Source: Salpingoeca rosetta
Taxonomy: Eukaryota > Protista > Choanoflagellata
NCBI GenBank assembly: GCA_033442325.1
Contig: JAWQFM010000021.1
Span: forward strand, 1,210,555-1,274,554
Direction of reading: 5' to 3'
DNA length: 64,000 nt
In this document: one piece after another, positions 60,255 through 63,936 of the stretch
Layout of the letters: each line of letters starts with the position of its first letter
How positions within the stretch are numbered: the first letter of the stretch is position 1
The notes under the pieces: generated by a model
Told to the model about the DNA's origin: nothing
Seen by the model: only the letters and a program-made list of their open reading frames with translations
Databases searched by the model: none
Made by a program: the position numbers and the translations under genes

Positions 60255-63200
60255 CTGGCTTGCTTATCCGCTACGAGGACCTCGTGGACTTCCCCGCAGA
60301 GGACAACGTCAAGCAGCTGCAGGAAGGCGTGCGCGACGTGTTTGGCACAGAGTCCACCGTGCACCTGTACCACGCCACGCAGAACGAGTCGCGCGCCCTC
60401 ATGCCGCACACAGACCCCTACGATGTCCTCGTGATTCAGCTTCACGGCTCAAAGCGCTGGACAACCTGCATCCCAGACGCATACGCCACCAGCGGCAGCG
60501 ACGACACCACGGAGGACCACAGCGACAGCCACCCCGATGAGAAAGCTGCTTCGTCCAGCAACGACCAACAACAGCACGGCCACGGCGAGGCAGAGACCAT
60601 CAAGCAGTTCAACCCGGCCCAGCTGGGCCAGCTGCAGGAGATCCGGCGCCAGAAGCAAGAAGGGTGCACGCGCTACGAGGACAGGGACCTGCGCGGCATG
60701 CGCTGCAACGAGTTCACGCTGCGTGCCGGCGACACCATGTACATGCCCAAGGGCATCATCCACTACGCCGTGTCTGGCGCAGAGGGCTCATCCCACCTCA
60801 CCATCTCGCTGGAGCGCAGGGGCCTGGCATGGGCCGATGCGCTCGTGTACGCCGCACACGCCGGCGCAGACATTGTGGACAACCCGGCCTTCACCAAGCA
60901 CTGGCAGCGGGCGCTGCAGTCGCTCATCAGCGACTACCGCGGCGTGCAGCTGCTGGAGGCCATGCCGTCCTGGCACCTCAACACGGGCGCGCTGTGCCCG
61001 AGCCACGACGCCACCAAGGAGAAGGACGATGGCACGAGCGAGGAGGGCACGACCGGCGGTGAGGAGGGCGAGGAGCTTACGGCTTTTATCGGGTCGTTCA
61101 TGGCCCAGTGCGAAGCGATGCTGCCGCACGTGCTCGAGTCATACGCCAAGGCCAACGACCTGGAGGCGTTCCTCAACCCGGACGGCATCGAGGCGCTGGC
61201 TGACCGCGTGTGCAGCGAGGACACGGCCCGGGCCGTCGTCAGCGAGCTCTGCGCACAGGGCAAGATGCCCGTGGACGTGACGTCACCTCGCTTCCGCAAA
61301 GAAGCACTCGCGGTCAGTGTGATCATTGCGGCTGTTTGTCTGTGTGCGTGTGTGTGCATGTGTGTGCGTACCCCTTTCTTCGTGGCCCCATCTCACAGTG
61401 TCTGCCGTACTGCTGTCACGTCACGCCTCTAGAACACTCGACAAAAGCGTGCGACAGTCACGGCTTCGTACACATGCAACAGTGCATGCAACGCGGGCTG
61501 TGATGGGTGAGTTACATACCGCTGCTTTGCTTGATGAACGCGTTAGACTTGGCGTGGGCAGTCTTGCGCACTGGTTCTCGTCTTCTTGCGCTACGCTGGC
61601 CAGATTAACAATTTCCTCGGCTGTGTGCTACTTTGTGGTGTGCAGGCAATCGTGTACTGGCTGCGATGACTCCTGCAACACGCTCTGCGACGACACGTGC
61701 TCAAGCTGCGACACAAGCTGCGACATTTGCTACGGCCAATCGTACGCGTGCTGTCATGATTGCTTTTGCACATACTTCCCTTCCGACTGATGATGTACTG
61801 TGCTCTCGATACTCGGCCGCCTCTCATTGCGTGACCCCCCCCCCTGTGCTGTCGTTCTGTTCATGGCTTGCAGATGCAGCAGCTGCGATCTGGCGTGCAA
61901 CACAGGATGTGACGGAGGCTGTGATGGTTGTGACCTTTACCAATGCAACTCGTCAGTACAGTGTTGAAGTCTGGTCGATTGTTTGTGTGAGTGTGTGTGT
62001 GTGTGTGTTTATGTGTGTGTGCGCGCGTGTGTGTGTATGCATATCTGTCTGCGTTTCTGCTTTCCCCTCGTGCTTTTCTCACACCAATGTGTAAACTAAT
62101 TGGTGTTTCAATTCATCAGTGGATGCGACTCAAGCTGCGATACCCTATGGTGGGACTGCGACAGCAGCTGCGATGAAAGCTGTGGCTGGAGTAAGTACAG
62201 TCGCTGCCCCTGATGCTGCTTACTCGTCCTGCTTGTCTCGTGTTTTCGCATGCATCTCACAGCATAGAGACACATAGTCACACCCACCAGCTTGTCTGCA
62301 GTCCGCAGACACAAGACCAAGTTCAGCTCGCATTCACAGCCACACACGCACACACACCCGCCGCTCCCTCACCATTCTCGCTTCCAAAAAATGTGTCGCC
62401 TTTGCTTCCTTCCAACCATCCATGGAACAGCGAGCTGCGACTACAGTTGCGATGACTATTGTGACACCGGTCAGTACCTGTTGTCTGATGTATGGCACAG
62501 CATAAATGTCGCTATGTTCATGCCGCTCGACCCAATGCCATGTCTGCCACCGTTGGCTTGTTATTCACATGGGATCGCTTGCTAATCTTCACGAACAGGC
62601 TGCAACCAAGGATGCGATTACTGCGTCGCGACGAATTGCAACGGCGGCTGCGATGACTCTTGTGACGGACCATGCAACACGTAAGCTGCCGTTGCTATTG
62701 TCTGCGCTGCACACGATTGTGCCTCTGCGATGCCTCTCCGTCTCACACAACTCATTCAATGCATTTACTTGGTGTGCAGGGGTTGCGATGGCAGCTGCAA
62801 CACGGGCTGCGATGAGTGCGTTGGCATTAGTTGTGATACGTCTTGTGATGGCTCGTGCTCGTGCAATGCCGGCTACGCTGGCAGCGGCACGTCGTGCAGC
62901 GCGTGCAACACGCCGTACTACAGCCCAAGCGCGGGCGCCAGCTCCTGCACCCCGTGTGGTTCGTGCTCGTCTGGGCAGTTCCGTGCCAACTGCGGCGGCA
63001 CCAGTGGCGGCACGTGCACCTCGTGTGCATCGTGCCCAGCAGGGCAGGAGCGACGAGGCTGCTCCGGCACAAGCTCAGGCGACTGCGCCAACTGCAATCC
63101 AGAGTCAGTTGCGGTATGCCTGTTGTGTGTGAAACTGTGGTCTGTGGCGTCTGGACACGTTGTCACGTGATCATGATCATTGCTCCTTCAGCGCTTGCGT

Positions 63201-63936
63201 GACCACGAGACCACGCGTACTCTCTCTTACTCTCTCTCTCTCTCTCTCTCTCTCTCTCTCTCTCTCTCTCTCTCTCTCTCCCTCTCCCTCTCCCTCTCTC
63301 TCTCTCTCTCTCTCTCTCTCTCTCTCTCTCTCTCTCTCTCTCACACACACACACACACACACACACACACTCTCTCTCTCTCGCTCGCACACACACACAC
63401 ACTCTCTCCCTCTCTCTCTCCCTCCCTCTCTCTCTCTCTCTCTCTCTCTCTCTCTCTCTCTCTCTCTCTCTCTCTCTCTCTCTCTCTCTCCCTCTCTCTC
63501 TCTCTCCACTGCACTCATTCGCCACACCACTCACACACAACCACACACGAACAAACGCAACGCCTTGCTTGCAGGACATACAAGACGACGCAAGGAACGC
63601 ACAGCTGCAGCGCGTGTGGCAGCTGCAGTGCTGGCTACTACCTGTCGGGCTGCGGCGGCACAAGCGCGGGCTCGTGCGTCGGCATTGCGTGCACGACGCC
63701 CCCGACGGTCAACCACGCTTCATTTACAACAAGCAACAGCCGCAAGTACCCGAGCACGGCAACGTACACGTGCGCCACGGGCTACCTGATTGAGAGCAAC
63801 GACAAGCTGTCGTGCAAGACAGATGGCTCGTGGAGCGGTGTCACGCCGCACTGCATTGGTGTTCCATGCCAGGAGCTCGCCCTGGATCACGGCTCCGTGT
63901 CGCCATCGGGCGTCATTCGCCATCCAAACACTGCAT
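60255..63936 (+). CDS. JmjC (ROX/Cupin_4-type) 2OG-Fe(II) oxygenase fused to RQKR, a Cys-Asp/Asn repeat array, TNFR-like repeats and Sushi domains; partial at both ends
   Basis: Exons ..-61312, 61433-61506, 61646-61741, 61874-61951, 62120-62190, 62431-62469, 62599-62680, 62780-63103, 63575-63936, all GT..AG with consistent phases. JmjC: VHLY..ALMPHTDPYDVLVIQLHGSKRW..FTLRAGDTMYMPKGIIHYA..SSHLTISL. Sushi: CTTPPTVNHA..ATYTCATGY..LSCKTDGSWSGVTPHC. Confidence 0.88.

Follow-up and report, generated by a model that had tools for sequence, protein, structure and literature searches.

JmjC oxygenases of the ROX class are cytosolic or nucleolar, carry no signal peptide and hydroxylate His or Arg residues of ribosomal proteins; to our knowledge the clade has been known solely in the form of such intracellular enzymes. 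Here we describe the gene PTSG_11500 of the choanoflagellate Salpingoeca rosetta, which lies at the end of a 64,000-nt stretch of contig C21 (G000:C21:1210555-1274554, hereafter the window; the contig ends at window position 64000). Its transcript joins a ROX-type JmjC domain to a furin/kexin-type R-x-K-R site and to an array of Cys residues, most of them followed by Asp or Asn. Sequence comparison places the gene in a family of giant type I surface proteins of choanoflagellates.

An extracellular branch of the clade was predicted by Iyer, Abhiman, de Souza and Aravind (2010; PMC2938197), who described an expansion in Monosiga of extracellular MINA/NO66-clade JmjC domains combined with GCC2/3, Sushi and other domains, and predicted that these proteins hydroxylate surface proteins or act as redox sensors. 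PTSG_11500 is of the same family: the Monosiga brevicollis protein XP_001747551 (A9V427) is among its homologues, and both have an N-terminal JmjC domain, ephrin-receptor-like/GCC2/3 repeats and Sushi domains. The two differ in the array, which is short in the Monosiga proteins and long in S. rosetta and others; in the 2010 article, as in our own analysis, the functions are predictions only. An earlier note on this stretch, made from its letters alone, knew of no described system of the kind. That was overstated, and the novelty is lower than the note estimated because the protein family was predicted in 2010. The words furin and cleavage do not occur in the article, and the passages on Cys-rich, GCC and MSD regions mention neither a Cys-Asp/Asn array nor a substrate in cis. 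The conserved unit of enzyme, site and array, and the hypothesis of action in cis, appear to be new. No further paper dealing with these proteins, or mentioning their locus tags or array strings, turned up in literature searches, nor did any experimental follow-up of the extracellular choanoflagellate ROX branch.

With NO66, MINA53, YcfD and YxbC the family of PTSG_11500 shares the HxD...H triad, the 2-oxoglutarate (2OG) Lys, the JmjC_2 profile and a double-stranded beta-helix (DSBH) with a helical C-terminal extension. It is unlike them in the signal peptide found in relatives of the window gene, in its extra conserved Cys residues and in its extracellular modules. JmjC proteins of the secretory pathway have precedents in other clades: JMJD8 is a protein of the endoplasmic reticulum (ER) lumen with a signal peptide (PMC5684140), and animals have a 'secreted JMJD5-like family' (PMC2938197). 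Both are single-domain proteins with no array and no convertase site.

Transcript and exon structure of PTSG_11500

The gene was modelled as nine exons, with GT-AG borders throughout and one continuous frame (window 60257-63936; Table 1). The public 720-residue protein P0001, named 'hypothetical protein PTSG_11500, partial [Salpingoeca rosetta]', is identical to the model over its whole length, and the model begins seven residues earlier, at the edge of an assembly gap. RNA data were mapped to positions 60255-63200, as raw reads from two stranded RNA sequencing runs and as Logan contigs from two older runs; that the older runs are RNA is a guess, though their contigs are spliced. Seven junctions were supported by both spliced raw reads and contigs. 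They include 61312/61433 and 61506/61646, both proposed in the earlier note. Junction 61312/61433 was crossed by 10 reads with 8 starts in X23 and by contigs in X4 and X8, and was also seen in X22. For the eighth junction, 63103/63575, the opening bases of exon 9 were read in loose ends at 63104. First mates mapped to the minus strand, matching a plus-strand mRNA, and the read depth over intron 1 was about one-tenth of that over its flanks.

The 74-nt exon 2, which had been placed in frame from the letters alone, is joined to exon 1 in phase 0 by spliced reads and extends it as NTRQKR-ATVTASYTC. A single 906-nt contig without mismatches spans exon 1, with the JmjC domain, to exon 8, which disposes of the possibility, raised beforehand, that transcripts would show the JmjC domain and the array to be separate genes. 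The JmjC enzyme, the RxKR site and the Cys-Asp/Asn array are therefore encoded by one mRNA. Transcript contigs reach 669 nt upstream of 60255 and approximately 8 kb past 63104, and the full protein should therefore be on the order of 3,000 residues. The gene copy in the window is truncated at both ends, because the gap cuts off its 5′ part and the contig ends at 64000.

All RNA reads and contigs have C rather than T at 60291 and G rather than C at 60518; these mismatches are either assembly errors or strain differences. At 60325, 60361, 60967 and 60988 about half of the reads carry another base, as expected from reads of a 99%-identical paralogue.

Table 1. Features of PTSG_11500 and its flank, in window positions
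Feature	Position	Strand	Remarks
Assembly gap	60155-60254	.	By paralogue comparison, covers the initial ~72 nt of exon 1 plus some of the intron before it
Exon 1, 5′ part missing: JmjC_2 catalytic domain and C-terminal helical extension	60257-61312	+	Ends ..KEALA, donor GTCAGT
H-T-D, first two Fe(II) ligands	60407-60415	+	Aligns with HYD of MINA53
Lys of GSKRW, 2OG-binding	60452-60454	+	Aligns with K of GEKHW in MINA53
Distal His, third Fe(II) ligand (GIIHYA)	60761-60763	+	Sequence and MINA53/NO66 alignment
Intron 1, 120 nt, GT..AG	61313-61432	+	Retention leads to a frame stop at the acceptor TAG
Exon 2, 74 nt: NT-RQKR-ATVTASYTC..	61433-61506	+	Linker with furin-type site and first array units
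R-Q-K-R, furin/kexin consensus	61439-61450	+	Sequence; conserved family motif
C-[D/N/T]-x-[S/G] Cx3C array	61475-62855	+	Last third of exon 2, exons 3-7, first 76 nt of exon 8
Exons 3-7	61646-61741, 61874-61951, 62120-62190, 62431-62469, 62599-62680	+	Array
Exon 8: array end (first 76 nt), then TNFR/ephrin-receptor-like (GCC2/3-type) Cys module from ~62856	62780-63103	+	
Exon 9: remainder of Cys-rich module, complete Sushi (~63690-63854), start of second Sushi	63575-63936	+	

Head, basic site and array across the family

Exon 1 matched the JmjC_2 profile (PF08007) with 61.8 bits against a cut-off of 22 (6e-17), and a sequence search of the PDB with this exon gave MINA53 and NO66 as the only significant matches. 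The Fe(II) ligands and the 2OG Lys that the earlier note had picked out were borne out by sequence and by alignment with MINA53. These residues were kept almost throughout the homologue fragments (HxD His in 125/126, Asp in 126/128, Lys in 133/133 and distal His in 139/141), and in all nine paralogue exons that are readable across the active site. Several extra Cys had also been noticed in the JmjC region; they were found again, and three of them (C216, C271 and C284 of P0009:22-575) hardly vary within the family, which fits a domain that has to fold under oxidising conditions. An AlphaFold2 model of the N-terminal 554 residues of the Hartaetosiga orthologue (P0009:22-575; 73-row alignment) had a mean predicted local distance difference test score (pLDDT) of 78, with the DSBH core above 90 and C-terminal helices at residues 326-472. 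The best Foldseek matches of this model were NO66, MINA53, B. subtilis YxbC and YcfD, with E-values down to 2.5e-12 and 12-16% identity to the PDB structures. As to the C-terminal winged-helix domain of ROX enzymes, the model offers helices only, ahead of its disordered linker, at an overall TM-score of about 0.35. Judged by these alignments, the head is a ROX-type (MINA53/NO66-like) JmjC domain with intact Fe and 2OG ligands. The location is another matter: the known ROX enzymes are intracellular, and here paralogues and orthologues have signal-like N-termini and are fused to Sushi and transmembrane modules.

An exhaustive profile search yielded 145 cluster representatives with E <1e-10. The named orthologues are from Hartaetosiga balthica (3,090 aa), Salpingoeca infusionum (3,044 aa), Microstomoeca roanoka, Choanoeca flexa and Monosiga brevicollis (XP_001747551, see above), and the family is common to at least six choanoflagellate genera. 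Two full-length orthologues from transcriptomes consist of a signal peptide, the JmjC domain, a basic site (PKRQKR/S or TRSRR/A), a long array and a Cys module, followed by at least six Sushi domains, HYR-like and immunoglobulin-like repeats, one transmembrane helix and a cytoplasmic tail. Long arrays, with 24-30 C[D/N] per 150 residues, were found in S. rosetta, Hartaetosiga, S. infusionum and Microstomoeca, and short ones in Monosiga. In other species the JmjC-RxxR-array unit precedes varied downstream parts, which in P0016 amount to a transmembrane helix only. Three array-less members, P0034, P0036 and P0041, carry another conserved Cys-rich C-terminal module (TLCD..GW..EC.GSD..C-like, sometimes doubled) that matched no family.

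Signal-like hydrophobic N-termini were present at every one of the 11 paralogous loci looked at, as well as in two orthologues, P0009 and P0010, which also have a C-terminal transmembrane helix and extracellular modules after the JmjC domain. The secretory localisation proposed in the earlier note is thus supported through relatives, by their N-termini, the extra Cys residues and the transmembrane helix, and would extend to the window copy, both of whose ends are missing.

The furin-type R-x-K-R site read in exon 2 is present and conserved. Basic sites were identified in nine of the 12 paralogues (ERVRR/A, RRRR/N, RQKR/A, RDKR/A, RVRR/A), the rest being gap-interrupted or unresolved. For statistics we used 35 representatives with an array after the JmjC domain and no more than 50% mutual identity. 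In 24 of these the array is accompanied by R-x-[K/R]-R at most 45 residues upstream of its first Cys, compared with 7 of 784 background windows (0.9%) from the same proteins; the binomial p is about 1e-41, ignoring relatedness, although the sequence around the site cannot otherwise be aligned. Among the other representatives, several show KR, RR or RxxR at this position. In the P0009 model the linker holding RQKR has a pLDDT of 46-59 and lies between the confident domain and the array (<50), so that the convertase site is probably in an exposed linker. P-domains in eukaryotes mark kexin/furin-type convertases, and four genome loci scored above the cut-off for PF01483 (P_proprotein), three of them clearly (about 74 bits twice, and 42) and the fourth marginally, with 25.

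The array, put at about 160 residues with some 32 of about 40 Cys before Asp or Asn in the earlier note, came on recounting to 172 residues and 39 Cys, 32 of which have Asp or Asn directly after them; the commonest spacing is Cx3C. Over 14 diverse arrays the unit reads C-[D 57%, N 19%, T 13%]-[S/T/G/D/A]-[S/G]. Ser makes up just 2% of residues directly after Cys (position +1), yet is the commonest residue at +2 and +3. Position +1 thus accepts Thr and nearly bars Ser, whereas Ser should be tolerated there if the residue simply formed a turn or bound a metal. Across genera the arrays share an aromatic insertion (FLW/FFGF/LWW), a CDGPC motif and invariant Cys and Asp columns. Between the window array and its relative on contig C6, synonymous divergence (dS) was 0.53 and nonsynonymous divergence (dN) 0.04, giving a dN/dS of 0.08, and none of 33 Cys had changed. 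By this measure the array is under strong purifying selection.

Predicted structures were less informative. In an AlphaFold2 model of P0001:340-600 (10-row alignment) the array had a pLDDT below 50 and the ephrin-receptor-like module about 90. When the JmjC head (P0009:28-495) was docked against the initial 66 residues of the array, the score was 0.00 with an uncertain partner fold, a result that speaks neither way on binding. An ESM Atlas search for look-alikes of the array gave nothing usable. A word-based homologue search with the array, insensitive outside this genome, returned the array itself and one S. rosetta paralogue, PTSG_08991, and a protein search of the organism's own genome, of low sensitivity, returned known loci only.

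The modules that the earlier note had placed after the array, TNFR-like and Sushi, are there. The Sushi profile matched the window model with E = 2e-12 (Pfam). TNFR_c6 matched weakly (E 0.063), but the Monosiga orthologue matched Ephrin_rec_like (1.5e-9).

The JmjC exon occurs in about 12 copies in the 55.4-Mb S. rosetta genome, with 52-98% amino acid identity: two on C21, one on C14, three on C29, two on C6 and one each on C4, C27, C34 and C12. This extracellular family accounts for 12 of the 15 JmjC_2 loci of the genome. Most paralogues have the same order of parts: a first exon that supplies the Met and a hydrophobic leader, then the JmjC exon, a short basic-site exon with [ST]-x-x-Y-T-C, small C-[D/N]-x-x-C exons, a CSCNPGY-type Cys module and Sushi domains. 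In the copies on C4 and C34 the array is short. The three JmjC_2 loci outside the family (C29:524749-525009, C25:650879-651187 and C9:984211-984516) are presumably canonical NO66/MINA53-type genes; the strongest of them is just 16 kb from the cluster of three extracellular paralogues on C29.

The genome was also scanned for array DNA with a CDxxCDxxC[DN] pattern in which the second base of the fourth codon had to be G or C, excluding TGTGAT-type microsatellites. It matched 63 times, about 44 times within 11 JmjC loci, and nearly all other matches were perfect short tandem repeats. One match lay in a 5′-truncated array copy on C19 with no JmjC upstream. This copy (C19:901001-911000, minus strand) corresponds to the second half of the array of the C12 paralogue, and is flanked downstream by a 2.1-kb gap; the ~6 kb upstream contain no JmjC exon. 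No other array was found to lack its enzyme, and this one may be a truncated duplicate. Going by this pattern, the array is almost confined to JmjC genes in the S. rosetta genome.

The window copy resembles different paralogues in different parts. Exons 1, 8 and 9 are 92-99% identical to the paralogue at C21:~780k (C21:776000-786000, minus strand), whose array cannot be aligned with that of the window, and exons 2-7 together with introns 1-3 are 77-94% identical to a paralogue on C6 at ~1.49M (C6:1486001-1496000). The C21:~780k array in turn resembles that at C6:1666001-1676000. Array cassettes seem to have been exchanged between paralogues by recombination or gene conversion.

Possible action of the head on its own protein

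The intact ligands and the secretory context suggest that the head would fold and work as a protein hydroxylase in the lumen of the ER or Golgi, and that it is an active lumenal enzyme we consider likely. Fe(II) and 2OG are available in these compartments, as they are for prolyl, lysyl and aspartyl hydroxylases, and are scarce in sea water; it is because they would be unavailable outside that we place catalysis inside the ER or Golgi. Late in the pathway a convertase would cut after RQKR and part the head from the stalk, and cleavage there by an enzyme of the furin/kexin type is, on the conservation of the site, somewhat more probable than its absence. The head would work on the chain that carries it and not as a general enzyme, because it is made one-to-one with each stalk, is removable at the site that follows it, and keeps its triad in every readable paralogue, which a shared activity in trans would not require. 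On these grounds we put action in cis at slightly below an even call. The neighbouring array is the obvious candidate, but that it is the target is a more tentative proposal. The specific modification, in which the head would beta-hydroxylate the Asp or Asn after each array Cys, is the chemistry that first suggests itself for enzymes of this class, yet is rather doubtful.

Beta-hydroxy-Asp and beta-hydroxy-Asn serve as a Ca2+ ligand in EGF domains and as an Fe(III) chelator in marine siderophores. The earlier note had proposed a self-modifying secreted fusion in which the head beta-hydroxylates some 30 Asp/Asn of its own array, a convertase removes the head, and the beta-hydroxy stalk may bind metal or adhere. 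The single transcript, the secretory context and the conserved R-x-[K/R]-R speak for this proposal, and its claim to have no precedent was overstated; with every step included we find it unlikely. The reading we favour asks for less, a ROX-type pro-domain that acts in cis on its own protein and is then cut off, and we hold it tentatively, at somewhat below even confidence.

Parts of such a scheme are found elsewhere. The propeptide of von Willebrand factor is an enzyme-like pro-domain that acts on a Cys-rich mature part and is then removed by furin at R-S-K-R. It is the nearest working analogy, with an N-terminal pro-domain, a Cys-rich target and a late R-x-K-R cut, but it promotes disulfide exchange, is not a 2OG oxygenase and has no relation in sequence or fold. 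AspH, which acts on EGF domains, is likewise a lumenal 2OG oxygenase and modifies Asp/Asn beside disulfide-bonded Cys in secreted modules, the chemistry proposed for the array; it differs in belonging to another family (PF05118, not JmjC_2), in being ER-resident and in acting in trans. Its consensus, C-x-[D/N]-x4-[F/Y]-x-C, had no match in P0001, P0009, P0010 or P0014. The borosin OphMA and the BURP-domain cyclases likewise join a catalytic domain to a repeated core peptide that is later released by proteolysis, although their chemistry and compartments are different, their products are small peptides and there is no homology. PTSG_11500 also carries a catalytic domain and a repeated candidate substrate motif in one polypeptide, as a unit conserved across genera, and here the product would be a large surface protein. 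The minicollagen/NOWA domains of cnidarian nematocysts, a lead only, have Cys at every fourth residue of a secreted structural protein, but are about 20 residues long with six Cys, Pro-rich, and have no Asp/Asn rule and no attached enzyme.

In line with what Iyer et al. (2010; PMC2938197) proposed for the relatives in Monosiga, the head could be a trans-acting or sensing one, which hydroxylates other secretory or surface proteins or reports oxygen or redox state through the receptor-like protein. The array would then be only a disulfide-rich, perhaps Ca2+-binding neck that keeps the head at a distance from the membrane. Many members do keep the catalytic residues in the absence of a C[D/N] array, Cys-rich necks beside ephrin-receptor-like and Sushi modules are ordinary in surface proteins, and position +1 of the array tolerates changes. 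A general ER enzyme, however, needs neither one-to-one synthesis with a 3,000-residue export protein nor a conserved convertase site, and an activity in trans shared among about 12 paralogues should have let some triads decay, whereas none was seen to do so. The scarcity of 2OG and Fe(II) in sea water also disfavours catalysis or sensing at the surface. We regard this alternative as possible, if on the unlikely side. A convertase site immediately after the domain, and an array that alone has no confident predicted fold, would both suit a different arrangement, in which the JmjC fold is a non-catalytic pro-domain that chaperones the folding or export of the Cys-rich stalk, or merely binds it, until removed at RQKR. 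The Fe ligands and the 2OG Lys, essentially invariant in a family with only 20-40% identity, are hard to explain without catalysis, and make this improbable.

Both alternatives accept the gene as a single unit. It could instead be two genes, or an artefact of the gene model or assembly that wrongly joins a neighbouring JmjC domain and array, and the locus gives some cause for suspicion: the 3.7-kb piece has a gap on one side and the contig end on the other, the window copy combines parts that resemble two different paralogues, and the reading that retains intron 1 terminates at 61432. Against this, mismatch-free spliced reads and contigs of exactly this copy link exon 1 to exon 2 and onward to exon 8, exon 2 has no start codon and is preceded by an in-frame stop, and the same layout recurs in transcriptome-derived orthologues of five other genera. 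Two separate genes or an assembly chimera can be rejected for practical purposes on the mismatch-free spliced reads and contigs, and the probability left to either is negligible.

Several points weigh against a pro-domain that hydroxylates its own array. Hydroxylation, its target and the cleavage are all inferred from sequence, and the signal peptide of the window copy is absent from the sequence owing to the gap. Known ROX substrates are His and Arg of ribosomal proteins, not Asp or Asn. Between the window array and its C6 relative, residues at +1 differ at 6 of 33 positions, including D to G and D to V, so that no single Asp is indispensable. The AlphaFold2 model of P0001:340-600 contains no confident fold for the array, and D, N or T after Cys could equally be structural, as Asx/ST turns or Ca2+ ligands. 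Of the 54 representatives in which 200 or more residues follow the JmjC domain, 24 have no array by the criterion used and have other Cys-rich segments instead; as these array-less members keep the near-invariant catalytic residues, the array cannot be the only substrate of the family. On these comparisons the array characterises a subfamily rather than the extracellular ROX proteins as a whole, and its co-occurrence with JmjC may reflect the duplication of one ancestral block.

The extracellular ROX branch is transcribed, as predicted, comprises about 12 genes in S. rosetta and has a conserved three-part unit of enzyme, convertase site and array. The prediction of 2010 that it modifies surface proteins is thereby sharpened into a specific hypothesis. 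If the head does act on its own array, this would be a new way to build a heavily modified surface protein and would widen the substrate range of the ROX clade, with a bearing on the construction of the cell surface in the closest relatives of animals. Should the modification be Asp/Asn beta-hydroxylation followed by release of the head, the protein would be the first Asp/Asn-directed, cis-acting member of the clade, and its stalk could provide a metal-binding or adhesive coat on a marine bacterivore close to animals. S. rosetta is amenable to transfection and genome editing, and the hypothesis is therefore testable in the organism itself.

Assembly context of the locus

The piece of sequence at 60255-64000 is bounded by a gap of 100 N and by the contig end. 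In the paralogue used for comparison the acceptor of exon 1, ..acag/ATGAAGGAG, sits 72 nt before the point at which the window sequence resumes. The signal-peptide exon upstream is outside the window sequence, and at the other end exon 9 has a donor at 63937, the gene continuing past the contig end. A candidate for the missing signal exon is a 99%-identical half-copy of the paralogue's upstream exon at C21:~744,300 (plus strand), which has its own Met and hydrophobic leader; an intron comes next, and beyond the intron a gap exceeding 6 kb. This is probably the home locus of the final 3.7 kb of the window, which may form an inverted pair there with the C21:~780k copy.

The scaffold has a patchwork structure at this end: window 56396-56996, for instance, is 99% identical to C21:770817-770216 and so stands out of order. 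Intron 8 and the flank of the gap (window 63220-63500 and 60070-60154) are taken up by long (CT)n/(CA)n and (GT)n microsatellites. Short (GT)n runs are found in most introns of all paralogues, and (GT)n runs are probably the cause of the many assembly gaps in this family.

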